Origin: Eutreptiella sp. 'Long Island Sound 2002'
Taxonomy: Eukaryota; Protista; Euglenida
DNA: 64,000 bases
NCBI GenBank assembly: GCA_964036045.1
Contig: OZ038379.1
Coordinates: forward strand, 48,298,001-48,362,000
Direction: 5' to 3'
Part shown: positions 8,221 to 60,000 of the stretch, piece by piece
Layout of the letters: each line of letters starts with the position of its first letter
Numbering within the stretch: the stretch's first letter is position 1
The notes under the pieces: model-generated
The model's input: the letters and a program-made list of their open reading frames with translations, nothing else
What the model was told of the DNA's origin: nothing
The model's database searches: none
Position numbers and translations under genes: made by a program

Positions 8221-8269
8221 GCAGACACCTCTGAGAAAATATGATGCACTTTCGGATGGATATTTTGGC

Positions 8270-8532: not shown

Positions 8533-8534
8533 TG

Positions 8535-10273: not shown

Positions 10274-12303
10274 TGAAACCATGTCTGGATGCCCAACGGT
10301 GATATGTAACATGATGGACAAGGTGTAGGATGTCACCGCAGCCCCCGAAGCCATGCCTCCATGCCTAGCGGTGATATGTAACATGATGATAACACCGCAA
10401 TCCCTGTAACCATGTCTCCTTGAGCAGCACGGGTATGTAACATGATGTACAAGGTGTAGGACATCACTACACCCCCTGAAACGATGTCTCCATGGGCATC
10501 AGAGATGTGTAAAATGATGTACAAGGTGTAGGATATCGCCACAACCACTGAAACCACATCTCCATGCCCAACGGTGATATGTAACATGATGTACAAGGTG
10601 TAGGGTATCACCACGGCCCCTAAAACCATGTCTCCATGCCGAGCGGTCATATGTAACATGATGTACAACGCATGGGATATCACCGCAACCCCTGACACGG
10701 TGCCTCCATGCCCAGCGGTGATATGTAATAGGATGTACAAGGTGTAAGATATCACCGCAAACCCTGAAACGATGCCTCCATGCGAAGCGGTGATATGTAA
10801 CATGATGTAAAAGGCATGGGATATCACTGTAGCCCTTGAAACCATGCCTCCATGCCTAGCGGTGATATGTAACATGACAATATCACCGGAGCCCATGAAA
10901 CCATGTCTGCATGCCGAGCAGTGATATGTAACATGATGCACAAGGTGTGGGATATCGCCACAACCCCTGAAACCATGTCTCCATGGGCAGCAACGATGGG
11001 TAACATGATGTACAAGGTGTAGGATATTACCGTAGCCGCTGAAAACATGCCCCTATGCCCGCCGGTGATATGCAACATGATGTATAAGGTGTGGGAAGTC
11101 GCCACAGCCCTAAAAACCATGTCACCATGGGCGGCAGGGGTAGGTAACATGATGCACAAGGTGTAGGATATTACCGTAGCCGCTGAAAACATGCCCCCGT
11201 GCCTGGCGGTGATACACAACATGATGGACAAGGGATATTACCGTAGCCCCTGAACGCAGGCCTCCATATAGAGCGGTGATATGTAACAAGATGTGCAAAG
11301 GGTATGATATCACTGCAGCCCTTGAAGCCATGCCGAGCGGTGATATGTACATGATGATATCACCACAGCCCTTGAAACCATGTCTCCATGCCCGGCGTGG
11401 ATATGTAACATGATGGACAAGGTGTAGGATATTACGACAGCTGCTCAAACCATAGTTCCATGCCCAACGGTGATATGTAACATGATGTACAAGGTGTAGG
11501 ACATTACCACAACCCCTCAAACAATGCCACCATGCCCGAAGCTGATATGCAAGATGATGTACTAGGTGCAGGATATCACTGCAACCCCTGAAACCATACC
11601 TCCATGCCCAACGGTGATATGTAACATGATGTACAAGGCATGGGATATCACCGCAGCCCTTAAAACCATGTCTCCATGGGCGGTAGTGATATGTCACATG
11701 ATGTACACGGTGCAGGATGTCAGTGCAGCCCTTGAAACGATGTCTCCATGCCCAACAGTGATATGTAACATGATGTACAAGGCATGGGATATCACAACAA
11801 CGCCTGAAATCATGTCTCCGTGCCCAGCAAAGATACGTAACAAGATGTGCAAGGTGTAGGATATTACCGAAGCCGCTGAAACCATGCCCCCATGCCGAGC
11901 GGTGATATGTAACATGATGTACCAGGTGTAGGATATCACCACGGCCCCTAAAAGCATGCCTCCTTGCCGAATGGTGATATATAACATGATGTATAAGGTG
12001 TAGGACATCACCGCAACCCTTGAAACCATGCCTCCATGCCCATGAGTGATATGTAACATGATGCACAAGGTGTAGGATCCCAGTGCAGCCCCTGAAACCA
12101 TGCATTCATGGGCAACAGTGATATGTAACATGGTGTACAAGGTGTAGGATATTACGGCGGCCCCTGAAAGCATGCCTCCATACCTAGCAGTGATACGCAA
12201 TATGATGTCCAAGGCATGGGATATTAATGGAGCCCCTGATACCATGTCTCCATGCCCTCCGGTGATACGTAACATGATGTACAAGGTGTAGGATATCACC
12301 GCA
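10274..12303. repeat. 72-bp tandem minisatellite
   Basis: Consensus gcggtgatatgtaacatgatgtacaaggtgtaggatatcaccgcagcccctgaaaccatgtctccatgccca (72 nt). The minus-strand ORFs show a matching 24-aa periodicity. Confidence 0.95.
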
Positions 12304-13500
12304 GAGGAGGTTGGGGGTCATGAGGGAGGGGCCAAGCTTGAGCGACCAATTGGCGTCCAATGCACTTGGTTGTATGTGGGTTGTCCCTTGGCCTGTGCTC
12401 CCCCAGTGCAAGCTGAAGCCCAGCGGCACAGTGTGATGTATGGCACGTGTAGCGACACAGGTCGGTTTTTTGCTGGCGGCAGTCACACAGGACGGCCAAG
12501 TTCCATGCCGTTTCCAGGATCTGGCAAACTGCTTGGACAATGTGAGTGGAGGAGGAGTCGGGGTAGTGAGTGGCAATCATGATATTATCCCGAAATTGGC
12601 AGAGTGCAACAACGCCGTGGGCATTACGCCAGAATGGAAACCCTTCGGGGGACATACACAACTCGCCCAGGGCATATAAGAGGCGGCGGGAGGTGAAGAC
12701 TGACCAAAGGCTATGGAGGTCCGATGCCTGTGTTGAAAACGAGCGCTCCATGGGTATGCATCCCTGTCTGCACCACAGCTATCCTGTTGCATGGACAAAA
12801 ATGTTATGCTCCATTTCAAATTCGATGGTGTCCATCATTTGTGCATGGGTAATGAACCAAAATTTTGTAGAGTTTGCTCTGCCCGCCCCGTCCAATTTGT
12901 CCGAGTCCCTGCTAACAAACAAGATGACTTCACTCATCCGCCAATGTTTTCTCTTCGACGGCCACTCACTGGCCGTTGTTGAATTCATCTTTATAATCTA
13001 TTTCCCTCAAGAACACGCAACCTACTAAATGCAGCCAATGGTACCATTTTGAAACCTCATAACCTCATGACCACATACACACGTGCTGCCTTTGGGCAGC
13101 TCTGTTGGCGGATTCTGTCCAGGGCTTCCCAGTCGTCGTTCCATACCACTTCATATACCCGAAGGTCCGCACAGCCTAGTGGTGTCCGGGACGTGTATTT
13201 GTGCCCTTCCAAATAAGCCCATTTGCGCAGCCAATCTTGTAAACCTTAATTGCGAGACACTTTCTAGTTGGTAATAAATATGAGGCTGCGTGCACTGCTT
13301 TGATTGTTGCCTGAAGGAAGTGCGGTTCCCCTGCAAAGGCTCTGCGCAGCGCCCGAGGCATCGCCCTCATGCTGCCCGCCCGTCCGTAGCCAGACAGGAG
13401 CACTGTCTGCAGCCAAGCGAGCGCGCTGAGGATTTGCCCCACCCACGTTCCGACCCACGGCCTCCCGTTCGCAAGCGCCCCCGTAAAAATTCCGCTCAAA
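12304..13500 (-). mobile_element. Penelope-like retroelement reverse transcriptase remnant, copy 1
   Basis: RT-like motifs occur in order across stops and frameshifts: SYLLPTRK; FLREIDYKDEFNN (motif A-like); EHNIFVHATG*LWCRQGCIPMERSFSTQASDLHSLW (motif B-like); LCQFRDNIMIAT (YxDD-like, 12584-12598); then LGPSLMTP. Confidence 0.7.
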
Positions 13501-14090
13501 TACTACCCTTTATACCAGTGCTTTAGCATCATTAGTGAGGGGCCAAGGCGCAACGTCCAATCGTCTTTTATTGCAGCAAGCTTAATATGGTTGAGACCTC
13601 CCCGACCGCCCCCCAAAGCAATGCAGAACCCCATACATCGCACAACGGGCCCCAGGCACAATCCTTGACAGCTACCATGCTTATCAGCACATGAACACTC
13701 CACCGGCTAGTGCCATGTGGTATCCAAAACCGTTTTGACTAATAAAACCAGTTCTCCGTAGTCAGAGGGGTCAGCATCTGTTGCTACCAGAAGGTTGTCC
13801 CTGAACTGGCACAAAACGCGATTTTCTAGCGCCTTGTCCAAAATATGTACTCCTTCGGAGAAACGTTCAGCGTCCCGAGGCGCCGAAACTCCTGTCTTCC
13901 CTTGTATGGACCCCAGATGGAATGTAGGTCCGCACTTTGTGCGGAAAAACTGCCTCCCATCAAATCAAAGCAGTCTCTACCCCACAACTGTCCCACCGCC
14001 CAACATTTATTGTTTTGTTGTGCTCAAAAGAGACATACCTCACCAACTCTTCGTGGGCCAGGTACCGAAATGGTTTGCTGGTACCTAGCC
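13501..14090 (-). mobile_element. Penelope-like RT remnant, copy 2 (diverged, tandem)
   Basis: MGGSFSAQSADLHSIW (~13915-13960), VLCQFRDNLLVAT (QFRDN at 13794-13808) and WTLRLGPSLMM parallel copy 1. Confidence 0.7.
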
Positions 14091-16155
14091 TTGGCCTATC
14101 CAACGCTGAGATAGAGTGGTATACTCCATATGACATCTTTCATGCGCCACCACCTCCGTTTTATCAAAAAAACCAATTTCCTCGGACATGTGGTTGTCGA
14201 TCCTGCCTGGCTGAATCTTGTAGAAGTGCTCTTTGCAGTCCACCTCCGTAATGGACCTCATGCCCCGTTGATTCACACACACAAACACACATATATTACT
14301 ATTATCATTATTATATATCATTATCATAATATAACCCGGTCTGAGATCAACTAGTTTGATGTCTCGGAGCCCCCATCCCTGTGGTTCCGGGAGCATATGG
14401 CAGCTGTGCGCCTGTGGAGATCATTGCATCACAACACAAGAGATACACCTTTAAATATGGTTAGTATTAGGAGAGATTTGTACAATTTGACCCTGTTTTT
14501 GCATGATGTTGCCAATTTGTGTACGCATTTGGCCACTCTAGTGCAACAAGCCTAGAGAACCACACCCATTGATAGTTTCACCATATGAAAAGACTATCTT
14601 TGGTCCAAAACATATTTCGGTCCTGCCTTCCAACTCGCAATAGACTGGGAGCTATGTGCGTGGCAAAATCGCGATTTTGACTTGTGTGCCTTGTTTGGAG
14701 ACCTACCATTCCGAGAACCGGAGGGAGTTGAAAGACGCCCTTCGAGTAAGTTGGACATTGAGCTCCGGGCTATGATGTATCAACACCACGGCCTCCGGTA
14801 TGGCATATGCTTAGAGCATGAGCTCTCACTTTCTGGTCAGTTTTGGGTGTTTTTGGCACTTGTGCTTGTTATGCCAATTTTACCCCATTCTTGTACCATA
14901 TTGACGCCTCCGATACCGACTCTTAACCCAGTGCAGCGGACTTCCCATGGCATGTTGCATATGCACCAAGGTCCCAACTCCGAAGTTGCATGTTGGTTGG
15001 CCATGACTCCATAGGCATGGGGCACCACACCATTCCTGGTATGTGCCTTTTCGTCCTTTTTGCCCCGTGCACCATATTGGTTCGGTCGGTGCACTACGAC
15101 CGACGGGAGTCAGGGAGGCACAGCTATGTGGGGGCGCAAGTTGAGGTCCCAAGACCTCATATCTAGAATATGGGAGTCGATCCTCAACTCACTAGGCACA
15201 TATGAGACTATTGGTGAGGGGATATCGGACCAGTTTTGGATACCACACCAGAGGGGTGCATATAGGGTCAATTTTACCCATATGTGGGATCACACTTTGA
15301 AGCCATTTCTCCAAACCCATTCGACCCCAATATGATCTGAAATTTGGGTGATGCAGGGCATGTTCCTGAGTGCGCCCTATGACCACAAGAGCTCACCTCT
15401 CCAATGGGTAGGGAATTAGGGATTCATCACTGCCCACAATTTTGGTAGTTTTTGACATGTGTGATGTGACCTGTGGATAGTACCATGTGCCCGTATCATG
15501 GGACCCGGACCACAGCCATGCCTTGGCTGGATCGGGGAAGGTCCCAAGACCTATGAATCCTGTGCATCTGATGCAGATTGCTTATGTTTCCCTATCTCCC
15601 CACACCTTCTCTGAGTTCCGTTTTGTATTGATTTCAGGGTTTCATCTTGGACTCTATTGTGCACTATGAGTTCTGAGTGACCCGCCCACGCCGTCCACTA
15701 CAGTCGAAGTACCTTCTATTGCCTCTGGACCAAATGTGGACGCAGGTGGACCTGGCTCTCTTCGAGTAGCCGGCTGGCCCAGGACTACCTGCGGCATCAG
15801 TGGATTGTGATTTTATTGGTTTTCATTGCCTTACGGGATACCAAGGGTTGTATTTGCAGGTTTTTTTGGATTTTCCGAAACATGCAGGCATGGATCAGGT
15901 CCAAGTCACTAGGGGTCACCGGAAGAAGGAAAAAGGGTTGAAAGGCGGTAGAGCGCACACAATAGCAGGGGGCGGTCCTGTGGACCTTCTTTCTGCGTAA
16001 ACCAATCATGAGACAACGAAGGATTGACTGGGCAAACAGTCAGTTGGGTTCAAAAAGATTTTTCTTCCTGGGTCAAAATAATAAGAAATCAACCGGAAGC
16101 TGCCTACATCGTATGCGACATGGGACAGCGGCGAGATATGAAGAGCTTGCTGCAT

Positions 16156-16345
16156 TGGGGAGGCCGGGTTTTCGTTTCCGGGGGGGGGGGGGGGTCGATA
16201 GAGCCCTCCGGTCGGACCCCCCCCAAAAAGGCTCAATTGACAGGACCCCAAAAATCCTACCGAGACTGACCCCCGGGCCTCGGAGGTGACCCAGACCCAA
16301 AAATCGGGAAAAAAAGAAAATGGGATTTTTCGAATCAGCGCCCCA
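16156..16345 (+). repeat. Dispersed repeat block (ggggaggccgggttttcgtttccgg...aaaatcctaccgag...gaatcagcg)
   Basis: Near-identical block at ~26068-26258 and a partial copy at ~48757-48830. Confidence 0.8.
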
Positions 16346-16859
16346 GGGGGACAATGGGCCATACGCCGACTCCTTCCCGCTTTGGTGCCACTTTCACGGC
16401 GGGGGGGGGGGGGGGGGGGGGCTGGGTCTGGGGGGTGGGGGGGGGGGGGAGCAGCTAGAGGGGGCGGCTCCAGACCCGTACATATATGGCGTGAAATGGC
16501 CGCCTCATTCGGTGATCACTTTGAGGTAAGGATGTAGGAGCAAAAAAAAATTGCAACAGGGGGGGGGGGGGCATGGTGGGTGGTACTTTTGTTTAAGGGC
16601 ATAGCACCCCCGAGTCAATTCCCCGCCACTATTGCTAGTGGCGCCCCACCCTGGCATCCCCAAACGAAGGGGGACAAAATCAGAATTGGCTGCTTGAGCC
16701 CTGCCTTCTGGGGGCCCACAAGTGGGCGGAAATGCTACATAACCCCTGCATTCTCGGGGATCCCCAACAAAGGGGACAACATCAAAGCACAAGGAAAAAC
16801 AAAAAAAACAAAAAAAATTTCCCCTCTTGTCCTTGGCCCTGTCTGTGGTCCCACACATT

Positions 16860-16930
16860 CCCCCCACCGGGGGTTGAACCCATGACCTTACAGTTGCAGA
16901 GGCAGTGCTTTACCCACTAGGGTATGGGCC
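16860..16930 (-). other. tRNA-derived sequence (tRNA pseudogene or SINE head)
   Basis: Minus strand reads GGCCCATACCCTAGTGGGTAAAGCACTGCCTCTGCAACTGTAAGGTCATGGGTTCAACCCCCGGTGGGGG, with A-box-like TAGTGGGTAAAGC and B-box-like GGTTCAACCCC at tRNA spacing. The anticodon stem is degenerate. Confidence 0.5.
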
Positions 16931-17172
16931 ATCTCTGACATACCATTGCACAGGGGTGGTATTGATATTGGGTCCAAACCCGGGGGGGCGACTACAACCG
17001 GTCCTGATGCGACCCACCCCCCAGCTATCTGTCAAAACTCGGGAGGGGGGGGGGGGGGGGGGGCAGAGTTGGGGGGGGTCCGGCCAGGGGTCGGGGGGGT
17101 GGTCAAGCCGGGGGTCGGGGGGGGGTCTGGCCAGGGGTCAGGGGGGCGTCGGATGGGGTGAGGGGGGGGGGG

Positions 17173-17202
17173 TTAGGGTTAGGGTTAGGGTTAAGGTTAG
17201 GG
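17173..17202 (+). repeat. Interstitial telomeric (TTAGGG)n tract 1
   Basis: ttagggttagggttagggttaaggttaggg. Confidence 0.95.
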
Positions 17203-18352
17203 TCACCGAGCTGGTGGAACCAGTCTTGGTTTTATAACCCTTTTTAGTGTCTAGGGTGGACCTACCAGGTTTAGCAGCAGCAGCAGCAAGCAGCAGCAAG
17301 CAGCAGCAGCAAGCAGCAAGCAAGCAGCAGCACGCGCGAAATGGGGAAAAATCAGATTTCCGTCGTGGTGCTTCAGATTCGGGTGAAATTTTGGTGGATG
17401 ATACCTATGGGTGTGAAGTACAATCACACAAAGTTTGAGCAAGAAACTCAACGGTGGCGGCCGGGAACGGGATTCGCAAGTGGCGGACCTCAGTTTCAGA
17501 AACTGCAGTTTAGGGCCAAAAACAGCCATTTTAGGGCCAAAAATGCCCTGGAACACATTCAAAACGGCCGAACCAAGGGAAACGGTGGGTACACTCCACG
17601 TGCGGCTTGACTTCCCCGTGTCAACGAGCTCTTTGCGGCCCTCTAACTCCATGATATGCCGCGGAAGCGGCCCAAAAAGGCCCCCAGAAGCTCCAACTGC
17701 CGACAGCCACAAACCAAGAACAGGCCATATCTTTGGCTACATGGCTCAAAATGCGATTCCGAGGGCACCTACTCCACCCGCAACCCCCCACGTTTTGTGG
17801 TTTCCACCCCTCAGAATTGCCCAAACGGACGCCTAGACCCCAATAACTAGGCCCACTAGGCTGTGGCAAGCTGCAAGCTCAAGCCCAAACAGGTGGGTAC
17901 CCAAATGGGTCAACAGGGTCCGAAAGGGGTAAAAATATGACGTTCCGCAAAAATGATCCTAGACCATGTGCGACGCTAAAACAAGTGTTTTTGGACTGTT
18001 TTGAGCTTGTGGTGGCCCATTTGGGTCCTCCAAAAATCCCAAAATGCCTTGAAAATGGGCTGTTTTGGGACCAAAAATGGGTCAAAAATGGGTCAAAAAC
18101 ACATTTTCCAAAACTCATCGTAGACCATTTGGGGTGCACAAAAGGGTGAAATGAGCCCATTTTGAGCCCATTTTGGGGCATTTTGGCCCCTGAGAAGTCC
18201 AAAAAGCCTTGAAAGTGGGCCTCGTGGTGATGGGGTTCAGGTAGATTTCACTTTGTCAAGAGCCATCAATGTGTGAATCATTCTTGATGTCCCTCACCAT
18301 TCATATCTAATGTTCCCTCCCCCACCAGCTCGGTCCCAATATTCAGTCTTGA
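17203..18352 (+). mobile_element. ~1.14-kb element with asymmetric TIRs, copy 1 (Helitron2/Helentron-like, non-autonomous)
   Basis: accgagctggtgg at 17205-17217 and its reverse complement ccaccagctcggt at 18322-18334, 18 nt before the 3' end. Internal (AGC/AGCA)n microsatellite; TTAGGG on both flanks. Confidence 0.7.
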
Positions 18353-18430
18353 TTAGCCCTAGGGTTAGGGTTAGCCCTAGGGTTAGGGTTAGGGTTAGGG
18401 TTAGGGTTAGGGTTAGGGGTAGGGCCAGGG
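18353..18430 (+). repeat. Interstitial telomeric tract 2, with TTAGCCC and other variants
   Basis: ttagccctagggttagggttagccctagggttagggttaggg... Confidence 0.95.
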
Positions 18431-19565
18431 TCACCGAGCTGGTGGAACCAGTCTTGGTTTTATAACCCTTTTTAGTGTCTAGGGTGGACCTACCAGGTTT
18501 AGCAGCAAGCAGCAGCAAGCAGCAAGCAAGCAGCAGCACGCGCGAAATGGGGAAAAATCACAACTCCGTCGTGGTGCTTTGGATTTGGTTGAAATTTTGG
18601 TGGATGATACCTATGGGTGTGAAGTACAATCACACAAAGTTTGAGCAAGAAACTCAACGGTGGCGGCCGGGAACGGGATTCGCAAGTGGCGGACCTCAGT
18701 TTTAAAAACTGCAGTTTAGGGCCAAAAACAGCCATTTTTGGGCCAAAAAAGCCCTGGAGCACATTCAAAACGGCCGAACCAAGGGAAACGGTGGGTACAC
18801 TCCACGTGCGGCTTGACTTCCGTGTGTCAACGAGCTCTTTGCGGCCCTCTAACTCCATGATATGTCCCGGAAACGGCCCAAAAAGGCCCCCAGAAGCTCC
18901 AAATGCCGACAGCCACAAACCAAGAACAGGCCATATCTTTGGCTACATGGCTCAAAATGCAATTCCGAGGGCACCTACTCCACCTGCAACCCCCCACGTT
19001 TTGTGGTTTCCACCCCTCAGAATTGCCCAAACAGACACCTAGACCCCAATACCTAGGCCCACTAGGCTGCGGCAAGCTGCAAGCTCAAGCCCAAACAGGT
19101 GGGTGCCCAAATGGGTCAACAAGGTCCGGTAGGGGCAAAAAGATGACTTTTCTCAAAAATGATCCTACACCATGTGCGACGCTAAAACAAGTGTTTTTGG
19201 ACTGTTTTGAGCTTGTGGTGGCCCAGTTTGGTCCTCTGAAAATCCCAAAATGCCTTGAAAATGGGCTGTTTTGGGATCAAAAATGGGTCAAAAATGGGTC
19301 AAAAACGCATTTTTCCAAACCTCATCCTAGACCATTTGGGGTGCACCAAAGGGTGAAATGAGCCCAGTTTGAGCCCATTTTGGGGCATTTTGGCCCCTCA
19401 GAAGTCCAAAAAGCCTTGAAAGTGGGCCTTGTGGTGATGGGGTTCACGTGCAAGCTGATTTCACTTTGTCAAGAGCCATCAATGTGTGAATCATTCTTGA
19501 TGTCCCTCAGCAGTCATAGCTGATGTTCCCTCCCCCACCAGCTCGGTCCCAATATTCAGTCTTGA
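18431..19565 (+). mobile_element. ~1.14-kb asymmetric-TIR element, copy 2
   Basis: TIRs at 18433-18445 and 19535-19547; collinear with copy 1. Confidence 0.7.
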
Positions 19566-19577
19566 TTAGGGTTAGGG

Positions 19578-20721
19578 TTACCGAGCTGGTGGAACCAGTC
19601 TTGGTTTTATAACCCTTTTTAGTGTCTAGGGTGGACCTACTAGGTTTAGCAGCAGCAGCAGCAGCAGCAAGCAAGCAGCAGCAGCAAGCAAGCAAGCAGC
19701 ACGCGCGAAATGGGTAAAAATCAGAATTCTGTCGTGGTGCTTCAAATTCGGCTGAAATTTTGGTGGATGATACCTATGGGTGTGAAGTAAAATCACACAA
19801 AGTTTGAGCCAGAAACTCAACAGTGGCGGCCGGGAACGGGATTCCCAAGTCGCGGACCTCAATTTCAAAAACTGCAGTTTAGGGCCAAAAATAGCCAATT
19901 TTGGACTAAAAAAGCCCTGGAACACATTCAAAACGGCCAAACGAAGGGAAACGGTGGGTACACTCCACGTGCGGCTTGACTTCCCCGTGTCAACGAGCTC
20001 TTTGCGGCCCTCTAACTCCATGATATGTCCCCGAAACGGCCCAAAAAGGCCCCAGAAGCTCCAAATGCCGACAGCCACAAACCAAGAACAGGCCATATCT
20101 TTGGCTACATGGCTCAAAATGCAATTCCGAGGGCACCTACTCCACCAACAACCCCCCACTTTTTGTGGTTTCCACCCCTTAGAATTACCCAAACGGACGC
20201 CTAGACCCCAATACCTAGGCCCACTAGGCTGCGGCAAGCTGCAAGCTCAAGCCCAAACAGGTGGGTACCCAAATGGGTCAACAAGGTCCAGTAGGGGCAA
20301 AAAGATGACTTTTCTAAAAAATGGTCCTAGACCATGTGCAACGCTAAAACAAGTGTTTTTGGACCGTTTTGAGCTTGTGGCGGCCCAGTTTGGTCCTCCG
20401 AAAATCCCAAAATGCCTTGACAGTGGGCTGTGACCAAAAATGGGTCAAAAATGGCTCAAAAACGCATTTTTCCAAACCTCATCCTAGACCATTTGGGGTG
20501 CACAAACGGGTGAAATGAGCCCATTTTGAGCCCATTTTGGGGCATTTTGGCCCCTTAGAAGTCCAAAAAGCCTTCAAAGTGGGCCTTGTGGTGATGGGGT
20601 TCACTTGCAGGCTGATTTCACTTTGTCAAGAGCCATCAAGTGTAAATCATTCTTGATGTCCCTCACTAGTCATAGCTGATGTTCCCTCCCCCACCAGCTC
20701 GGTCCCAATATTCAGTCTTGA
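19578..20721 (+). mobile_element. ~1.14-kb asymmetric-TIR element, copy 3
   Basis: TIRs at 19580-19592 and 20691-20703; separated from copy 2 by ttagggttaggg. Confidence 0.7.
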
Positions 20722-45634: not shown

Positions 45635-46385
45635 ACATGAAGACACATATGCACATGCATGCATGCATGTATGTACAAATGGAATGCATGCACAGATGTA
45701 CATACGTATGCATCTATGTATGTACATACGTAGGTACGTATGTCATATGCATGCACTTGCTCGTTGCTATGCAGCTGCAATGCTCTGTCTTGCCCCTACA
45801 CCCACAGCGGTCCAGTGAGCCAGCCGGTCGTGGCCAATGCTAATGCAACTAACGCTCTGCAGCTGCCACTGCCCCCAAAGCCTGGTTGGCTGGTATCCCC
45901 GCTTCTCTGGGTTCTCTGTCATGCTGTGGGCCACCTCCGGCAGCCCTGGCAGCCCTGGGACCCACGGGATCAAGCAAGGTAGGAACCACCTGCCTGTGCG
46001 GGATGCCCGGTAACTCTAGTAGACAGCATGATAAGTGATTATGACTATGACTATGACTATGTCATGCATGTATGTATGTACACGTATGGAAATATGTATC
46101 TGTGTATGCATGCATGCATGCATGCATGTATGTATATATGTATGTATGTATGTACGTACGTGTGCACATGCGTACGTATGTATGCATGCGCGGACCACCT
46201 GCCTGTGCATGATGCCCGGTAACTCTAGTGGAAGGCATGATAAGTGACTATGAATATGACTGTGACTATGTATGCATGCATGTATGTTTGTTTGTATGTG
46301 TGTATGCATGCATGCATGCATGCATGCATGTACGCGAACGTACGTACGTACGTACGTATGCATGCATGCATGCGTATATGTATCT
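45635..46385. repeat. (CATG/TACG/TATG)n microsatellites within a ~210-bp tandem duplication
   Basis: accacctgcctgtgc..gatgcccggtaactctagt...atgataagtga.tatga occurs at ~45986 and ~46195, each copy followed by gcatgcatgc/acgtacgt tracts. Confidence 0.9.
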
Positions 46386-47359
46386 ATTTTTTTTCGATGT
46401 CTTGCAGCAACCGGCGATGGACACCCCACGGCGACCTAACGCCGCGGGGGCACAGCAAAACCCTGGCCGGGGGCCGCCGGGGCTACCTAGAGGCACACAC
46501 CCTGCAGCATGTGAGGCGGCCGCTGGCAGCAAGGGCTCCCGCAGGTGCCCTAGCTGTCATGGGTCGGTGCGCGCCCTGTGTGCAGTGCTTAATGTATGCC
46601 GAGTGCACGGCGGGAAAGGGAGCCACGGGACACGGGGAGAAGCGAGAGGTGAGCCCTGAAAGGAGAAAGGTGAAGACGAGGGTAGGGGACCAGGTGCAAG
46701 GGGTGGAGGGTAGGAGGGGTGCCGCTATGAATGCCGTGCTAAGTGCTCACTAAGTGCATGCCGGTGGGGATGGGGACCAAGGCGCAAGAGCAGGGTGGCA
46801 GGGTTTGACACAACAAGAATGGGGGTGCGAGGGGCGGAGGGTGGGAAGCGTGCTGCGCACAGTGCCCTGCTAAGTGCTCGCTAAGTGCGTGCGTGCCACA
46901 GGGGCGTGGGCCGGGGTGGATTTGAGCCTAAAAAGGAGGCAGTGTGTTGCTCACACTCGGACCCTAAGAAGTGTTGTAAAACCTCGACAGGGTAAACACA
47001 ACTCGGTAATCAAGACTTATAGTAGGACCAAGTTGGGCCCTAGTTTTGTGGACAGCACACCAAAATTCATGATCCTTTCGGACTCTTGTTGTGCAGCTTG
47101 ACCACGCTTATTGCCTTGAGGTAATTTTGGAAATTGGAAAAGGGGGAAAACGAGAAAATGTATGGTTCTGATGTCGGGATACAACCTATAAGGTCGCAAT
47201 GACCGAACTTTCCTCCCCCGACTAGAGTAAATACCCGGTCTTAGGTGCTACCCTGCTCTGAAGGGTAGTTTGTATACTGGTGGATGCGCTTCCCAACGGC
47301 CGAAAGCGTAGCACCCGTTGCCCCCCACGATTGTGGCATGGGCACAACATTTATCTCTT

Positions 47360-50800: not shown

Positions 50801-51526
50801 GGGGTGCAGGAACCCCCCCCCAAAAAAATAGGGTGCCGCCCCCCCCCCCTCCCCGAGCCCTCTAATTGGTGCACTGGGTACCTGGGGTCGTTCGGGTAAT
50901 AGAATCATCGGACGGCCGCGTCAGGGTTTCTCCAAAGTCTCCATGGGCATTTTTCCATTTAGGTTCGTGACCACTTCCTGGGTACTTCTTGACTACTTCC
51001 TCATTTACTTCCTGATCCGAAAGGGGATCCTGAATATACATCCTGACCACACTTCCTGATCAGAAAGTACTTGCTGAATCGAATTTCCTATGACACTTCC
51101 CGATTGTGCATTGTGTTTTGCTTCGCGTAGGTCGGTTGTGGTTTGGGTCACAAATCAAACGAACACCAAGTTATGCGGTGGAACTTGCAATCATTGTTCG
51201 GTATTCATTCACACACAACAATCTTCCTTTCCCCTCAAACCTCCCTTCTCTTCTCTTCTTCAACATGTCCACCGTCCCCCCCGTCGTTTCACGGTGGCTC
51301 TCCGCCACCGCAGAGTGCGTCGGCACGCGGACCATATCGCCCGCGCAAGGGGATTAGGAAGACTGACTTTTCAACCGGCCATTACTGTGGGGAGGATCTT
51401 CGCAAGGCGGTCAGTGGTCACAGATGTCACGCCCGGACTCATATCGGACTTCGTAGTCCGTGTGTTCCATCACAATGCGGAGTTGCGTACGGTGGTGGTG
51501 CGCTTCAACAATACGGATATCCCTAG

Positions 51527-51635
51527 GTACTTGTATGAAAAGTAGTATTGTTCATTGTTCATTTTTGATACATGAACGATTCATATATGAAACATGAACT
51601 ATAAACAGCTTTTATGAACGCTTGTTTGTCCACAG
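51527..51635 (+). other. Fold-back GT-AG intron 1 (109 nt)
   Basis: gtactt...gtccacag; gttcat x2 followed by atgaac x3. The acceptor position and phase match the homolog at 6123. Confidence 0.65.
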
Positions 51636-52364
51636 ATTTTGTTACGTCTTACCCTTACTCCGTCTTCACGGAGCTGAACATGATGCTTGTTCGGCTCAGT
51701 GGTGCCACCGCTCTTCTGGACAGCAAGTGTTCCAACCTGTTGGCACAATGGATGTCATCGTCCCCCCTCATCCGGGCCCGTTTCACGGAGGCAATGGACC
51801 ACGTTCCCCTCCCGGCGGTCCACAAAACCAAGGTGCGGGCCATCCGTACGTATGCGGCACCCTTTCTCGCACCCTATCTGATAGGGCTCCTTTTGGAGTT
51901 GGGTGCACCCCGGTCCGGCTTCCGTGTATTGTGTGAGTACATCACCCGCCAGGGCGATGCCTACACCGCCCGCACCGGGCTGCCCTTCCCATGGCCCATC
52001 GCCACACTTGACCAATTTGACGCAACGTGGAGGTCATTGACCGCTCCGCTTGCGTTGTCCCCCCCCGGTGGAATGTGCCGACCCCCCGTCGTCGGGTCGC
52101 TGCTAGCCACTACGGTCTTGGACACAATCCGTGCAATTCTGGCCAGCCCTGCGCCAGTCTATTGATTGGACCCGCCCCCTCACCTTTGTGGTGCGGGGTG
52201 ACGGGTATCCTTGGGCCGGTGGAAGTTGGTCGCAGCTATCCGTGGGGCTATTGAGCCATGGGGTAAAGGCGCGAACACGTGCCTTCCTATGGGGCATCGG
52301 CATGGCCCTCACGGGGGACAAGGATATGGTTGCCCTCGGCCAAATTTGGGCTTAGGTGCTTCAG

Positions 52365-52523
52365 GTTTGTAGTCTGCATTTTCGTGTTCATATGTTGTTC
52401 ATAATTCGCGGGTTCATAATTCGAAAACCGCCGTCATAAAACGCCGTGCTGCCAATTGATGAATTATGAACGTGCTTTATGAACACGAATTATGAACACG
52501 TGTTATGAACATACGTCCTACAG
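52365..52523 (+). other. Fold-back GT-AG intron 2 (159 nt)
   Basis: cag|gtttgt...gtcctacag; gttcataattcg pairs with cgaattatgaac (12 bp), and cgtgttcata pairs with tatgaacacg. Confidence 0.75.
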
Positions 52524-52884
52524 TCCATTGTCGGCTGCAAAAAAAATTTACTGGTGCAACAGCTGGGTGCCGGCAGCGGTCCTCCTTGGTGGGCACCAGC
52601 CGTGGCGCCGGAGGGTGCTGGGCGTCACCATGGCTCCCCAAGTGGGGAGCATTTTCAATGAGGCCGTGCGGGACAGCACGGCCAAGCGGTGGAACACTGC
52701 TTCGGGGAGCCGGGGTCGCACTATTTGGTGTTCCTCGCCGCTTCACTTCTAAGCACCACCCCCCAAGCACCCTCCACCCAAGCGCCCTCTGCGACCCACC
52801 TTTATTACTCTTCGCCCATCCATGGACGACGCCGAGCTGAGGAAGCTGCTGGAGGAGGGTCAAAAGGCCACCCTCCCCCTGGTG

Positions 52885-53051
52885 GTATGTTGTCTGTCTG
52901 ATGTTGTTTGCCTTCATATTGCGTTCATAATTCGGCGTTCATAAAACCGAATCTGCCGTCATAAATGAATTATAAACCGATTTATGAACTCATGAATTAT
53001 GAACCGGTTTTATGAACGATATATGAATAGCTTCCCCCGCGTCCACAAGAG
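52885..53051 (+). other. Fold-back GT-AG intron 3 (167 nt)
   Basis: gtg|gtatgt...gtccacaagag|cag; cgttcataaaaccg pairs with cggttttatgaacg (14 bp). Removal is phase 0 and frame-preserving. Confidence 0.75.
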
Positions 53052-54115
53052 CAGCGGCTGGCAGCCCAAGGTCCAGCTCAAGCTCAAGCTCAAGCTCAAG
53101 CTCAAGCTCCACCCCCAACTCCACCTCAAGCGCCTCCGCCCCCTCAAGCCTACTCCTCCGGGCGACCCCCTGCCGCTCACCCCGCCTCCCCACCCGCCGG
53201 CGACTCCTCGAGTGAGGAGTCGTTGGACTCGTTGGAGCAGGAGAGGAAGAGGAGGAAGAAGGAGAGGAAGAAGGAGGAGACGAAGAGGAAGAAGGAGAAG
53301 AAGAAGGAGGAAAAGAGGAAGAAGAAGGAGGAAGCGGGGGGGAGGGGGGTGAAGGAGGAGGAGGCCGCGACCGACATCGAGGAGGTGAAGGCCGAGATGG
53401 AGGATGTGGCAGTGGAGGGGGACGCAGGGGGTGCAGGGGGGGAGGGGGTTTTGGTTGTGACCCCGTGGTTGAGGGGGGAAGCCGGCGATGCACGGGGCCT
53501 GGACCAGGCCAACCAGCGCAACGTGCTGACCCTCCCCTGGGTGCAGGGAGCGCTGGACAGTGGGTACGCCCCCGATGCCCCCCCTTTTTGGAGCACCGAG
53601 GTGACATACATCACCCTGCGCTAGGCATTTCACTGCCTTTTGCGGCACCGCATCCGCAAAAAGGGTGCGGGGGGGGGCCTGGCGGCACACAGGGGGGGCA
53701 TGGGCATGGAAACCCGAACCGGGAAAGCCCCTGTCCCCCATCTCCGAACCAATTGGTGCCGGGGATTCGACGCAGGCCAAAGTTTTTAGGGCATTGGGAA
53801 CTGTGCTTCCTCCACTGGGAGGAAAGGGGGTGGGTGAAGCCGCAGCGCTCCGGGCGCAAGTTGGAGTGTATCCCCTAGTGGGTATCCATTTTGGGGGGGG
53901 GGGTGTATGACCCGGGGCAGGAAGCCTCGTAGGAGGGGGGCGTTGACGGCCTCACCATCACCCGCCCCATCAAGCCCCTTGGCCGGGCAGCCCCAGCCAC
54001 CAACAGCACCACGTCCCCTACGGGCCCCCCCCAGGGCACCCCTCCCAGTGCAGCTACGCATTTCCGGACCGCCCTGGGCGCAGTGGGCACCGTCGGACCA
54101 GAGCCGGATTTCAAG

Positions 54116-54244
54116 GTATCTGCTTTCATAATTGGTTCGAAATTCACTCATAATTCGGCGTTCATAATTCACCGACCCTGCACTGCCCGCTTTTGAACCA
54201 TGAATGTGTTTTATGAACGCGTTTTATGAACGGCACTGTCACAG
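54116..54244 (+). other. Fold-back GT-AG intron 4 (129 nt)
   Basis: aag|gtatct...gtcacag|gtc; cgttcataa pairs with ttatgaacg (two copies). Phase 0 on both sides. Confidence 0.8.
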
Positions 54245-55954
54245 GTCAGGGACGTGGAAGCGAACCCGGCGGACGTCGCGGGGGTTCGCATCCGCTACCG
54301 GCTGGGCACCGCCGAGTTCAGCATCGCCCTGTCTGCCCTGTACCAGCTGCTGCCCCTCAACCCGCAACGGGGGTGCTCTATCCTGTCCGGGTTGCGGGAG
54401 TGGGAACGGTCCCGCCGCCTAACGGACACTTGGGTGGCGAATACGCGTGCTGGGCTAGCCTGGTTGAGTTGGGGTGGAAGGGCTGTGCTGACGAGGAGAT
54501 CCTGCTGTCCAGTTGTGGGTTGAACCCCCCCCGCAGCCGCACCGCCTCCCCAGCAAAGCCCCCCCGCTCGCCGAGAAACCCAACCCCCGCCCTACCCCCC
54601 CCCCCAAAACCCACCAAACCCAAAAAGCCCCCCACGCACAAGAGCAAGTCCTTCGAATCGAGCAGCAGCTCATCGTCGGACCAGGCACTCCCCCGTGGAG
54701 GTGGATGTCATCGTAGAGGTCTTACAGGACTACGGGTGGCAAATGCTGACACGGGCCAGACTGCAACTGCAGGCGGTGCGGTGGTCCAGACTGCTTGAAT
54801 GCCTCTCAAGTGGCCACGGTGGACAGCCTGTCCTGACCCCGGCGATGTCCTGGGACCAAGCGCTGCGGAGTCGACATAGCAGTGCCACTGTTCGTGCCTT
54901 GGTGAATGCGCTGCACAATTGCCACAAGGCCACTAGGGACGTCTGATGGGACCTGTGGTCTCAACGCTATGAAGGTGACCCTGTCCCCTCCTGGTCGGTG
55001 CTTCCGCTTCTCTGCCATGGGTGCGGCGTCATTGCGCCAGTGTGGGTGCACCAATGCGCCTCTATCCCGCTGTGTGAGTCTTGCCGCGAGTGAGCTTGCC
55101 GGGGGTGGCCCAACGTGAGGTGGGCACTAGAGCACTCACGGCGGATGTCCTCGATTGGGTGGCAAGTGATTCGTGACTCAGAGGACATACAGGTCGATGG
55201 CTTGCACAGCCTGGATGTGCCCACCTTTGACCTTCCCATGCTCCTATGGCGGGCAACGCTGGATGGTGACTCTCGGATCCTCTGTTTTGGCATCGGAGGG
55301 GAGATCAAGCGACGCACTGAGGGAGTGGGCGACTGCAGATATGGCGTGGTGCGTTCGCATGGGCAGTCGCCTACTAGGCGTCATGCTCGGGGTTCTGCAT
55401 GCTGGCGGGATGGGATGACGGGATGGACGTGGCTTCGTCCAGACGTGTGTGTGCGGTAATGGCGGATGTGATATTACAACCATCGCGACGAGCAGGTCGT
55501 GCCGGCCCGATAGTGTGCAATACCGGCGCCGCACGGACAGCTGGGACGACGTATAGCTACTCCCGTCTACCCCGGGTCGCGAATTGAAACAGTGTGGTGT
55601 CATGGGTCGTCCCGACCGGGCTAATAAGGCCCAAACCCCTGTAGGGTATTCCTATGGCACCGGGGTCTATACTAGCGGCTTGGCTACGGCAGATACGGGG
55701 GTTTCATCCTTGGGTTACTCCGGGGGAAGAAGTGACGGGGCGCACGTCGACACACTGCACCGCCGGCATTGGCCGTGCGCTGTGGGTTGCGACCATGTGA
55801 ACCCAGCAGCTAGAGCAGCATGGTGTGCTACAATTGGGTTGATGAAATGGTTTGCGTCGCCGGTGAGTAGAGGGATGCGGATGTTGCAAACTTGGGGTCC
55901 TCGTGCGGTGTCCATGGGGGCTAAGGGGCGTATGTGTATGGACTGAGGGAGTAA

Positions 55955-56245
55955 CAACGGCGTTATTGGGGTGTCCCTTGACCCCAAGATCAACTCAAGG
56001 AGGTATCGGGGCTTCGCGCGGGCCCCAAGAGAAACTTCGTGGCGGTATTGGGGTGTCCCTTGTCCCAAGGAACAAACCTGGGAGGTACGGGGGCCTCCCA
56101 CGGGCCCTAGGGGAAAATCAATGGCAGTATCGGGGTGCCCCATGATCCCAGAAACAACTCATGCAGGTACTAGGGCGTCCCTCTGACCCGAGACACAACC
56201 TAGGGGGGGTTTTGGGGCATCCCCTGACCCAGAAAGAGAACTAGC
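55955..56245 (+). repeat. ~41-bp degenerate tandem repeats, possibly right-end subterminal repeats
   Basis: g(c/a)ggtat(t/c)ggggtgtccc(t)tg(a/t)cccaag... recurs about 7 times, with alternating variants. Confidence 0.7.
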
Positions 56246-56336
56246 GGGACCTTGCCAGCAAAAAGATTGTGTATAAAGTCTTCTTTCTGATGTGGCATGT
56301 TGCTTTTGCAGTGTACACAACAAGAGGTGTGATATG

Positions 56337-56340
<4 letters not shown>

Positions 56341-56392
<52 letters not shown>
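56341..56392. repeat. (AT)26 microsatellite
   Basis: Direct reading. Confidence 0.98.
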
Positions 56393-56394
<2 letters not shown>

Positions 56395-56464
56395 TATGCT
56401 TGGAGGAAGGGGCGCGGGGGGGTTGGTGTCACAATGGGTGTGCAAAACGTTGAGGCCCCCCACC

Positions 56465-57060
56465 CCATAGGTCGCCATAGGCCCTAATAGTTCCCCGTAG
56501 GTGCCAATGGGTCCCCGAAGGGCCCCATAGGTCCCCATAGGTCCCCATGGGACCCCATAGGTCCCCATAGGCCCCCATAGGTCCCCACAAGCCCGCGTAG
56601 GTCCCCATAGGTCCCCGTAGGTCCCCATAGGCCCCCATAGGCCACCATAAATCCCCATAGGCCCCCATAGGCCCCAATAGGTCCCCATAGGTCGCCATCG
56701 ATGCCAATCAGTCCCCATGGGGGACGTATTGGGGCCTATGGGGACCTATGCGGGCCTATGGGGACCTATGGGGGCCCATGGCAACCTATGGAGACCTATG
56801 GGCACCTTTGGGGACCTACGGGGGCTTGTGGGGGCCTATGGGGGCTTGTGGGGCCAACGGTGCCCATAGGTCCCCAAAGGTCCCCATAGGTCCCCAAAGG
56901 TGCCCATAGGTGCCCATAGGGCCCCATAGGTGCCCATAGGTCCCTAAAGGTCCCCAAAGGTGCCCATAGGTCCCCATAGGTCCCCAAAAGGTGCCCATAG
57001 ATCCCCATAGGTCCCCATAGGCCCCCATGGGTCCCCAGAGGCCCCCAAAGGTGCACCAAG
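56465..57060. repeat. 10-bp satellite (gtccccatag)n with an inverted central block
   Basis: Forward at ~56465-56700, reverse (ctatggggac)n at ~56715-56860, forward again at ~56865-57060. Confidence 0.9.
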
Positions 57061-60000
57061 GTGTAGACCCCCAAAATAATTGGCGCGACCCCATGCGCCA
57101 ATTCCTCTGGGGGTCTAGACCCCCAAAATAGTTGGCGCGACCCTATGGGCCAATACCTAGGGGAGTCTAGACCCCCAAAATAATTGGCGCGACCCTATGC
57201 ACCTATTCCTATGGGGGTCTAGACCGCCAAAATCATTGGCGCGACGCTATGCACCAATACCTATGCGGGTCTAGACCCCCAAAATTTTTGGTGTGACCCT
57301 ATACACCAATTCGTATGGGGGTCTAGACACCCAAAATAATTGGCGCGACCCTATGCCCAGATTCGTATGGGGGTCTAGACCCCCAAAATAATTGGCGCGA
57401 CCCTATGCGCCAATACGTAGGGGGGTCTAGACCCCAAAAGAATTGGCGCGACCCTATACACCAATTCCCATGGGGGTCTAGACCCCCAAAATAATTGGCA
57501 CGACGCTATACACTGATTCCTATGGGGGTCTAGACCCCCAAAATAATTGGCGCGACCCTGTGCGCCAATTCTTATGGGGGTCTAGACCCCCAAAATAATT
57601 GGCGCGACCCTACGCGCCAGTTCCTATGGGGGTCTAGACGCCCAAAATAATTGGCGCGACCCTACGCGCCAATTCGTATGGGGGTCTTGACCCCCAAAAT
57701 AATTGGCACGACGCTATGTGCCAATTCCTATGGGGGTCTAAACCCCCAAAATAATTGGCACGACCCTGTGCGCCAATTCCTATGGGGATCTAGACCCCCA
57801 AAATAATTGGCGCGACCCTATGCGCCAATTCCTATGGGGGTCTTGACCCCCAAAATAATTGGCACGACGCTATGTGCCAATTCCTATGGGGGTCTAGACC
57901 CCAAAAATAATTGGCAGGACCCTATGCGCCTATTCCTATGGGGGTCTAGACCCCCAAAATAATTGGCGCGACCCTACGCGCCAATTCCTATGGGGGTCTA
58001 GACCCCCAAAAGAATTGGCGCGACCCTGCGCGCCAATTACTATGGGGGTCTAGACCCCCAAAATAATTGGCGTGCCCCTATGCTCCAATTCCTATGGGGG
58101 TCTAGACCCCCAAAATAATTGGCGCGACCCTACGCGCCAATTCCTATGGGGGTGTAGACCCGCAAAAGAATTGGCGCGACCCTACGCGCCAATTACTATG
58201 GGGGTCTAGACCCCCAAAATAATTGGCGTGCCCCTATGCGCCAATTCCTATGGGGGTCTCGACCCCCAAAATATGTGGCGCGACCCTATGCGCCAATTCC
58301 TAGGGGGGTCTAGGGGCCCAGAATAATTGTCGCGATGCTATGCGCCAATACCTATGCGGGTCTGGACCCCCAAAATAATTGGTGCGACCCTACACACCAA
58401 TTCCTATGGGGGTCTAGACCCCCAAAATAATTGGCGCGACCCTATGCCCCGGTTCGTATGGGCGTCTAGACCCCAAAAATAATTGGCGCGACCCTATGCG
58501 CCAATACCTAGGGGGGTCTAGACCCCAAAATAATTGGCGCGACCCTATACACCGATTCCCATGGGGGTCTAGACCCGCAAAATAATTGGCGCGACCCTAT
58601 ACACCGATTCCCATGGGGGTCTAGACCCGCAAAATAATTGGCACGACGCTATACACTGATTCCTATGGGGGTCTAGACCCCCAAAATAATTGGCGCGACC
58701 TTGTGCGCCAATTCTTATGGGGGTCTAGACCCCCAAAATAATTGGCACGACCCTACGCGCCAATTCCTATGGGGGTCTAGACGCCCAAAAAGATTGGCGC
58801 GACCCTACGCGCCAATTCGTATGGGGGTCTTGACCCCCAAAATAATAGGCACGACGCTATGTGCCAATTCCTATGGGGGTCTAGACGCCCAAAAAAATTG
58901 GCACGACCCTATGCGCCAATTCCTATGGGGGTCTAGACCCCCAAAATAATTGGCACGACCCTGTGCGCCAATTCCTATGGGGGTCTAGACGCCCAAAAAA
59001 ATTGGCACGACCCTATGCGCCAATTCCTATGGGGGTCTAGACCCCCAAAATAATTGGCACGACCCTGTGCGCAATTTCCTATGGGGGTCTAGACCCCCAA
59101 AAAAATTGATGCGCCCCTATGCGCCAATTCCTATGGGGGTCTAGACCCCCAAAATAATTGGCGCGACCCTACGCGCCAATTCCTATGGGGGTCTAAACCC
59201 ACAAAATAATTGGCGCGACCTTATGCACCGATTCCTATGGGCGTCTAGACCCCGAGAATAATTGGCGCGACCATATGCGCCAATGCGTAGGGGGGTCTAG
59301 ACCCCAAAATACTTGGCGCGACCCTATACACCAATTCCCATGGGGGTCTAGACCCCCAAAAAAATTGGCACGACGCTATACACTGATTCCTATGGGGGTC
59401 TAGACCCCCAAAATGATTGACCGCGACCCTGTGCGCCAATTCTTATGGGGGTCTAGACCCCCAAAAAAATTGATGCGCCCCTATGCGCCAATTCCTATGG
59501 GGGTCTAGACCCCCAAAAGAATTGGCGCGACCCTACGCGCCAATTCCTATGGGGGTCTAGACCCCCAAAAGAATTGGCGCGACCCTACGCGCCAATTACT
59601 ATGGGGGTCTAGACCCCCAGAATAATTGGCGCGCCCCTATGCGCCCGTTCCTATGGGGGTCTCGACCCCCAAAAAATGTGGCGCGACCCTATGCGCCAAT
59701 TCCTAGGGGGGTCTAGGGCCCCAAAATAATTGAGGCGACCCTACGCGCCAATTCCTAGGGGGGTCTAGACCCCCAAAATAATTCGCGCAACCCTATGCGC
59801 CAATTCCTAGGGGGGTCTAAACCCCAAAAATAATTGGCGCGAGCCTGTGCACCAGCTCCTATGGGGATCTAGACCCCCAAAAGAATTGGCGCGAACCTAC
59901 GCGCCAATTCCTATGGGGGTCTAGACCGCCAAAATAATTGGCGCGCCCCTATGCGCCAATTCCTATGGGGGTCTGGACCCCCAAAAAAATTGGTGCGACC

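Follow-up and report, generated by a model that had tools for sequence, protein, structure and literature searches.

Short repeated motifs just inside the terminal inverted repeats (TIRs) are known in several cut-and-paste transposons, for example the 12-bp TnpA motifs of En/Spm-CACTA and the AAACGG motif of Ac/Ds. Sites bound by the transposase may also lie in the interior of an element; the internal transpositional enhancer (IAS) of phage Mu and the HDR enhancer of SB aid or regulate the assembly of the transpososome. In maize, insertions of Ds and dSpm are spliced from the host pre-mRNA by means of splice sites in their termini. Euglenid non-conventional introns have borders other than GT-AG and a stem that pairs the intron ends. 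Regulation through subterminal repeats has been described for the subterminal repeats of piggyBat and the THAP sites of the P element (PMC11707139, PMC7776569). Introners are mostly non-autonomous and reside in host genes (PMC12130899), and those of Amoebophrya form hairpins (PMC7789003). In the present study we analyzed a stretch of 64,000 nucleotides of the euglenid Eutreptiella sp. 'Long Island Sound 2002' (assembly GCA_964036045.1, contig OZ038379.1, positions 48,298,001 to 48,362,000 of the forward strand), which is called the window; positions without another label refer to it. A first reading of the letters (the original prediction) had described four short fold-back introns in one element of this window. 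The region in question is a single decayed copy of a high-copy cut-and-paste DNA transposon, internally deleted and truncated at its 3' side, and it contains four islands of a short repeated motif. Sequence comparisons make it likely that islands 2 to 4 are arrays of the element's own putative protein-binding sites residing in introns, and that this arrangement is old and maintained.

The islands resemble introners (Micromonas, Aureococcus, dinoflagellates, fungi) in that they are short, related, often hairpin-forming units that appear to be removed as spliceosomal introns, and in that transposon ends are tied to splice signals. Unlike introners, they are confined to the transposon's own genes, have neither TIR nor target-site duplication (TSD) at their borders, are orthologous in sister families, and consist of arrays of the subterminal motif. 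The subterminal arrays of known transposons also present a short motif in both orientations inside the TIRs, where the element's own protein binds to it and where it can either inhibit or promote transposition. Those arrays stand at the ends only, whereas in the present element complete fold-back arrays also stand in at least three introns and co-vary with the family. Like Ds and dSpm, the termini carry splice-site-like signals, namely GT at positions 7-8 of the 5' TIR and a conserved acceptor at the end of the 5' terminal region; unlike those insertions in host genes, the signals here concern the element's own leader and own introns. The enhancers of Mu and SB may be functional analogues, but they belong to unrelated systems and their sites are neither intronic nor fold-back arrays. 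The original prediction had also considered hybrids of canonical introns and structured, euglenid-type non-conventional ones. This proposal is not supported, since every copy and family compared has canonical GT..AG borders, and a sister family has polypyrimidine tracts. Our literature searches brought up no transposon in which arrays of the terminal motif make up the element's own introns.

The motif of the islands

We searched both strands of the window for exact matches to GTTCATAA and TTATGAAC. All 15 matches were located inside the four islands (coordinates used: 51527-51635, 52365-52523, 52885-53051, and 54116-54244), against 1.55 expected by chance, and none of 100 shuffles reached 15. 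This agrees with the statement that such fold-back arrays had not been seen elsewhere in the window. The described polarity was confirmed as well: the plus-strand copies are in the 5' halves of the islands and the minus-strand copies, that is, the complements, are in the 3' halves. The islands are also AT-rich, with a GC content of 30-43% against 55-60% in the background. Over all DNA examined, the 32.7 kb of element sequence contained 128 matches, and the 146 kb of other DNA contained 1.

In the main family, to which the window copy belongs, the 8-nt motif GTTCATAA is also the subterminal repeat of the element, present just inside both TIRs in opposite orientations. The mean pairwise identity of the motif columns in this family was 0.90, compared with 0.80 in the spacers and 0.79 in the flanking exons. 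When CpG columns were excluded and the base class was stratified, the values were 0.904 for the motif and 0.808 for the spacer (p = 2.5e-4). That is, the motif columns evolve about 2 times slower than the spacers, and as slowly as second codon positions.

Islands were compared in five families, of which the four others are designated L008, L010, L012, and L013. Each family has its own motif: GTTCATAA in the main family (31 copies in islands and 1 outside), GTTATAGCG in L012 (22 and 3), GTTTCTAG in L013 (4 and 1), GTTTGAAYC in L010 (13 and 2), and GTTCTAC in L008 (14 and 0). All five motifs start with GTT, and the copies on the GTT strand are in the 5' half in nearly all islands. In L010, copies of the motif also stand at both presumed ends of the element, in plus orientation at the 5' one and in minus orientation at the 3' one. 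Orthologous introns (see below) thus carry family-specific motifs, and the content of the arrays has therefore changed in concert with the family. Such a concerted change argues for a constraint from the element's own recognition system, and against the idea that the islands are relics.

Islands 2 to 4 as probable introns

Judging from their sequence, islands 2 to 4 are very probably spliceosomal GT-AG introns of the two reading frames of the element, and they are called I2, I3, and I4. Like all other parts of the element, they are on the plus strand. I2 (52365-52523, 159 nt) has three copies of GTTCATA(A) followed by four of TTATGAAC, forming a strong hairpin, and its borders, CAG/GTTTGT..CCTGCAG/TCC, are conserved in 7 copies. 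I3 (52885-53048, 164 nt) has two copies of GTTCATAA followed by three of TTATGAAC and degenerate ones; its borders, GTG/GTATG..TGTCCACAG/GAG, are conserved among the 4-7 copies compared. In the window copy the acceptor of I3 is mutated from CACAG to CACAA. The original prediction had placed the end of this intron at 53051; the family acceptor is at 53048, 3 nt upstream and in the same frame. I4 (54116-54244, 129 nt) has TTCATAA-type copies followed by copies of TTATGAAC, and its borders, GAG/GTAT..TGTCACAG/GTC, are invariant in 4 copies. The exon phase is 0 on both sides of I3 and I4, and the removal of these two introns joins the flanking frames in phase 0, as had been stated. Of the four GT-AG introns first proposed, islands 2 to 4 are thus retained on account of their conserved borders and orthologous introns, whereas intron 1 proved to be the 5' end of the element.

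I2 carries in-frame stops, and it interrupts the predicted helix 86-109 of the modeled transposase core. We compared the exons on its two sides with P0169, a relative that is uninterrupted at this site. The last 61 amino acids of exon A align without a gap to residues 40-100 of P0169 (E 8e-6), and the first residue of exon B aligns to residue 105 (E 2e-11); that is, the exon pieces abut within 4 residues. We considered whether L008, the contig that encodes P0169, is a spliced mRNA, and rejected this: it is another element with its own motif arrays on both sides of the open reading frame (ORF). P0169 therefore counts only as an uninterrupted homolog, and not as a transcript.

The sister family L012 comes from a different assembly, has 63% GC, and shows about 41% protein identity to the main family. 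It possesses introns of the form GTACAY..polypyrimidine..CAG at the sites orthologous to I2, I3, and I4. Exon A and the corresponding exon of L012 are 42% identical without a gap over 231 amino acids, and both end on the last residue before the donor. The predicted spliced L012 junction FQ/ALQKIIDTG matches the continuous P0169 sequence ..SAIQAIIDG without a gap. The second intron of L012 precedes a K/E-rich exon and is orthologous to I3, and the third precedes ..EIEVNPQDYRGVRI, which is homologous to the VDVEVNPADVAGVRI found after I4. L013 also has an intron at the I2 site, with a polypyrimidine tract and CAG. L008 and L010 have no intron at the I2 site, and in both of them islands are present elsewhere.

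Between copies of the element, the differences in island length are not multiples of 3 and often amount to one 13-nt motif unit; the length of I4 varies by whole 13-nt motif units. The island positions themselves were fixed in all copies compared. A search for homologs bridging island 4 gave only genomic copies of the same assembly. The family has been amplified to hundreds of island-bearing copies, and the master copies must therefore have made a working protein.

Termini and copy number of the element

The full-length element is about 5-5.6 kb long and is present in hundreds of copies. We compared the window copy with eight others (L001-L007 and L011), among which L002 (5908-11537), L006 (6908-11856), and L007 are full-length and L001 is an internal-deletion derivative. 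L011, whose protein is 54% identical, was considered as an old subfamily; this was rejected, as it is an ordinary rearranged copy with about 79% nucleotide identity. A TIR of about 35 bp, CCCTWGGYRCCTGTATGAAARGTAGTWTTGTTCAT, is inverted at both element ends. Nine copies carry it at the 5' end, and five of them (L001, L002, L006, L007, and L011) also carry it at the 3' end. In 4 of the 5 two-ended copies an identical dinucleotide (GA, AG, TG, or AT) stands just outside both TIRs, and the lone copy that has no 2-bp TSD is a rearranged one. Because of the TIR at both ends and these matching dinucleotides, we class the element as a DNA transposon of the cut-and-paste type whose TSD is 2 bp long.

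The upstream flanks of the 9 copies are unrelated, and every copy starts at the base equivalent to 51521. Dispersed copies with unrelated flanks are numerous, and internal-deletion derivatives are among them. The 175-amino-acid exon that follows island 1 has more than 200 paralogs with 70-88% identity, all from one ENA assembly. The summed read depth over the element was about 5,000-20,000, compared with about 30-45 for perfectly matching contigs; the only public runs containing the stretch are DNA contigs. One of the tiny runs of this species that were presumed to be RNA was also compared with the stretch and gave no match. The bin with 51521 has a depth of about 14,600, compared with about 460-930 before it, an increase of about 20-fold. 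A pattern scan of JGI metagenomes for the TIR gave zero matches.

Island 1 as the 5' end of the element

In the window copy the 5' TIR (CCCTAGGTACTTGTATGAAAAGTAGTATTGTTCAT) occupies 51521-51555, and the same sequence is inverted at the 3' end of full-length copies. The left TSD (AT) is at 51519-51520; its right counterpart is absent, as this element copy is 3'-truncated. The base at 51521 is the first base of the TIR, and the GT at 51527, previously taken as the donor of intron 1, is at TIR positions 7-8. The original prediction had placed a transposase exon before this GT. Since the TIR starts at 51521, the flanks differ in 9 copies, and the depth jumps there, 51265-51526 is flanking DNA, and only the acceptor at 51635 looks conserved.

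The 5' terminal and subterminal region (51521-51635) consists of the TIR and the GTTCAT/ATGAAC subterminal repeats, and its inner edge reads ..TTTGTCCACAG/ATTTTGTT, followed by the family ATG. The conserved acceptor is 8 nt upstream of this start codon. A pyrimidine-rich tract and CAG are present 8-13 nt upstream of the homologous start codon in L010, L012, and L013 as well. Furthermore, the 3' half of the terminal region is paralogous to the 3' half of island 3, about 22 nt and the acceptor being common to both. Because of this acceptor, conserved in four families, and of the paralogy with island 3, the terminal region is probably removed from the leader. That is, island 1 appears to be a terminus that probably doubles as a 5'-leader intron or an outron, and no upstream exon lies inside the element. 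The donor might be supplied by the GT of the TIR, by an upstream host exon, or by trans-splicing. Removal of the leader would also eliminate several upstream ATGs created by the ATGAAC motifs.

Splice-like signals were also seen at the extreme ends of the element. They are CCCTTG/GTACCT at the 5' end (L006:6908-6913, equivalent to window 51521-51528) and ..TTTCATACAG/GCGCCAAGGG at the 3' end (L006:11840-11856). Splicing from end to end would leave 6 + 10 nt and the 2-bp TSD, 18 nt in total and in frame, which may be a matter of chance. At this place the 5' TIR retains GT, while GC is found in three of the four 3' TIRs, possibly also by chance.

The transposase and the second gene

Pfam searches with 8 + 6 + 10 + 3 protein pieces and a PDB sequence search gave no meaningful match, including to the models of RAG1 and Transib. 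The sole lead to RAG1/Transib on the sequence side was an atlas feature match (0.93). An exhaustive HMMER search collected 364 relatives of the transposase, down to about 30% identity, with the conserved blocks GGDxPW, C(I/V)LHCxMAxGRL, SPDGEET, and D(V/I)VESxNRxLK..HSxRGGG. We then modeled the uninterrupted relative P0169 with AlphaFold, using an alignment of 42 sequences as the input (pLDDT 75, pTM 0.73). The top 39 matches of this model in Foldseek were all RAG1 cores, with E values down to 4e-5. In VIA-align, the comparison with RAG1 gave a Z of 14.7 with an rmsd of about 4.0 Å over about 300 residues; the corresponding Z was 8.9 for HzTransib, 7.9 for the P element, and 5.4 or less for unrelated chains. 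From the Foldseek and VIA-align matches we therefore assign the RAG1-core fold to the modeled transposase core.

The element thus shares with Transib and RAG1 (PDB 6dbj, 3jbw, 6pqn) the RAG1-type fold as well as CxxH-like and ..ESxN.. motifs; after RAG1, the best structural match is Transib. It differs from Transib in that its TSD is 2 bp and not 5 bp, its TIR starts with CCCTWGG and not with a CACGGTG-like heptamer, its genes are intron-rich, and no match is found in Pfam or PDB at the sequence level.

In L012 the second gene (L012:3415-5475) is a single 2-kb ORF of 687 amino acids. Its product is almost wholly of low complexity (P/Q/S/E/K-rich) and has no known domain. Between copies of the element, third codon positions were the most diverged (0.124 / 0.105 / 0.155). 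This excess at third positions indicates that the family spread with the protein under selection and with the islands in place.

Fold-back structure and paralogy of the islands

Perfect stems were found in two islands of the window copy. In island 3 the stem is 14 nt long (52936-52949 paired with 53005-53018), as had been described, and in island 2 it is 13 nt long (52396-52408 paired with 52486-52498), one more than the 12 first reported. When compared with dinucleotide shuffles, islands 2 and 3 were more stable (z -3.7 and -3.3, respectively). Island 4 of a better copy gave z -6.1 against mononucleotide shuffles, and islands of L012 gave z values down to -7.7 and -12. Island B of L010 was no more stable than shuffles. 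The fold-back layout and its polarity are conserved across the five families. A search of the region in Rfam matched no family.

The islands are also related to each other in sequence. The original prediction had regarded them as sharing the motif and not a collinear sequence; we found that they are collinear paralogs with 68-78% identity over 90-130 nt. In the window copy, islands 2 and 3 are 68% identical over 126 nt. In other copies the identity was 72-75% between I2 and I3, 73% between I2 and I4, and 73-78% between the fifth array and the reverse complement of I4. The islands share a non-motif core resembling GAGAACTGCCGTCATAAA.

Other parts of the window copy and neighboring features

Exon A (51636-52364) encodes the N-terminal part of the transposase up to ..GDGYPWAGGSW..QIWA.VLQ and is degenerate in the window copy. 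The family start codon has become ACG at 51644-51646, stops are present at 52163-52165 and 52353-52355, and a 1-nt frameshift is located near 52059, where half of the family copies have one base less. Long homopolymer runs of C and G occur at 50810-50850 and in many places of the element, and the 1-nt length polymorphism at 52059 is in such a C run. The region 52524-52884, as compared with L002, L003, and L006, consists of the remnant of exon B, which encodes the transposase core, and the start of the second reading frame. About 775 bp have been deleted internally between 52694 and 52736, and loose read ends are found at 52691/52736. The second reading frame opens at the ATG at 52822-52824 (MDDAELRKLL..). 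Exon C of the second gene (53049-54115) encodes a P/Q/K/E-rich low-complexity protein and has several broken frames in the window copy. Exon D (..VRDVEANPADVAGVRIRYRLGTAEF..) extends over 54245-54697. The similarity to the family stops after 54697, and a consensus of loose ends was found at 54699 with an agreement of 0.9. The fifth array and the 3' terminus, which are present in full-length copies, are therefore missing from the truncated window copy, and the window contains no 3' TIR.

Several features adjoin or interrupt other copies. In L002, alone among the compared copies, an AT-rich insertion of about 740 bp (L002:9350-10090) directly follows island 4 and is probably a nested unrelated element. 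In L004, exon C is separated from island 4 by about 3.8 kb of unrelated DNA without motif copies (L004:10064-13869), probably through a nested insertion. An ORF of the piggyBac type (DDE_Tnp_1_7; L006:4778-5407) adjoins the element of L006, and a Ty3-type integrase bearing a chromodomain (L010:16197-16921) is near that of L010. A short CCCTAA telomere-type repeat (L008:1759-1775) is just downstream of the 3' array of the L008 element.

Elsewhere in the window, a small element at 5841-6642 lies between the inverted repeats ..GTAGAGACC.. and ..GGTCTCTAG... It has a diverged transposase exon A, with 69% identity over 146 nt to 51869-52013, which is preceded by a pyrimidine tract and a TAG acceptor. 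Its sequence suggests that this element belongs to a sister family and is non-autonomous. At 56200-57100 there is a degenerate tandem repeat array of about 900 bp, whose minus-strand frames are GDLWGPMGTYG-like units and which has internal inverted similarity. A simple repeat block of the CATGCA/TACATA type at 46000-46750 gives long spurious ORFs on both strands.

Comparison of the possible explanations

Among the options raised by the original prediction, binding-site arrays in the element's own introns fit best, since the motif is the subterminal repeat, is conserved above the spacers, and co-varies in five families. The mechanism that we propose is as follows. Each of islands 2 to 4 is a paralogous fold-back unit of about 130-165 nt. 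The motif sits just inside both TIRs, the usual place of binding sites for a transposon's own protein, and the intronic arrays are most likely internal copies of these predicted sites. They would be tolerated inside genes because splicing would remove them from the mRNA. On the DNA, the arrays may serve as a decoy, as an autoregulator, or as an enhancer of transposase assembly. The fold-back layout would mimic two paired ends without cleavage sites, and it would also yield stable pre-mRNA hairpins that bring the splice sites together. Going further, we speculate, with more doubt than confidence, that the element belongs to a group of RAG1-fold transposons which has a 2-bp TSD and has not been described before. 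In such a group, arrays of the end motif, as an analogue of a repeated nonamer-type site, would be deliberately kept in introns as fold-back 'mini-ends', where they would adjust transposition in the manner of an internal enhancer or decoy, and the motif in introns and termini would co-evolve with the DNA-binding specificity of the family.

Several points weigh against binding-site arrays in introns. The folding expected by the original prediction held for islands 2 and 3 of the window and failed for islands 1 and 4, which are no more stable than dinucleotide shuffles (z -0.8 and -1.35). The conservation test rests on 4-7 related, non-independent copies. The identity of the intron motif with the subterminal repeat was seen directly in the main family only; it is plausible in L010, and the contigs of L008, L012, and L013 have no ends. 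The DNA contigs from public runs include the islands, and none of the 15 listed read joints (32 more exist) corresponds to an intron. Finally, similar patterns in the sequence would be expected if the hairpins acted at the RNA level, or if gene conversion with the termini passively homogenized the arrays.

The function may instead be exerted by the RNA, and we think this unlikely. The hairpins would join the splice sites of the pre-mRNA and so allow efficient splicing in any host, or they would be diced into small RNAs that target the element ends, so that the element limits itself or is silenced by the host; in that case, the match to the terminal motif would tell of origin and not of DNA binding. 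Such a role would agree with the very stable hairpins predicted for the window (z -3.7/-3.3) and for L012 (-7.7/-12), with the layout and polarity conserved in all five families, and with the hairpin-forming inverted repeats at the ends of the Amoebophrya introner introns (PMC7789003). A hairpin, however, needs complementarity only, yet here the exact motif is conserved and is equal to the repeats beside the TIRs. In addition, island 1, window island 4, and island B of L010 are no more stable than shuffles, and no Rfam family was matched. Less probable still, in our estimate, is that the islands are passive relics, descended from miniature forms of the two element ends which were inserted in the parent and happened to be spliceable, their similarity being due to gene conversion or recent origin. 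The paralogy with a shared non-motif core and the roughly 22 nt and acceptor common to the 5' terminal region and island 3 are in line with such an origin. So are the variable number of motif units and the cases of L008 and L010, which have their islands elsewhere than the I2 site, so that gains and losses do occur. Against this stand the motif columns, which evolve as slowly as second codon positions, and the three intron positions that are orthologous at about 41% protein identity in different assemblies; as the islands of each family carry its own motif, sustained concerted change would be needed. Moreover, neither the element's TIR nor a recognizable 2-bp TSD is found at the island borders. 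An origin from insertions of miniature inverted-repeat transposable elements (MITEs) is likewise possible but unsupported, as no TIR or TSD can be recognized there.

We give little credence to the introner-like family that the original prediction had proposed, in which the islands would be copies of a small mobile intron-creating element spread across the host genome that also landed in the transposon. Short, similar, GT-AG bounded fold-back units do stand in several places, and introners are mostly non-autonomous TIR elements (PMC12130899). But the 146 kb of non-element DNA that we examined, which is a small part of the genome, contained no solo unit and a single motif match, against 128 matches in 32.7 kb of element. 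The borders have no TIR or TSD, all copies have the islands at the same positions, orthologous sites are occupied in sister families even though the motifs differ there, and the TIR scan of JGI metagenomes gave zero matches. It is just as improbable that the islands are not introns at all and represent binding arrays between genes or ORFs, or debris in dead copies, the ORF pieces being separate genes or pseudogene fragments. The many stops and frameshifts of the window copy and the low-complexity second gene with no known domain would fit this. However, island 2 splits one RAG1-like core inside a predicted helix where homologs are continuous, canonical donors, polypyrimidine tracts, and in-phase CAG acceptors occur in the islands of the sister family, and the hundreds of island-bearing copies imply that master copies made a working protein. 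We therefore continue to regard intron-resident arrays of the element's own putative binding sites as the likely explanation of islands 2 to 4.

Significance of the arrays

In genome annotation, fold-back islands that are rich in AT may be confused with MITEs or introners, and the termini of a transposon may be taken for introns. RAG1-fold transposases with unusual ends, that is, with a 2-bp TSD and a TIR that has no heptamer, bear on the diversity of the relatives of the V(D)J recombinase. The family-specific GTT-type motifs offer a natural series for studying how the specificity of end recognition changes. Should the arrays prove functional, a transposon would be able to house cis-acting DNA sites within its coding regions by way of introns, at no cost to the protein, and this would be a layer of self-regulation or transpososome assembly that has not been described before.

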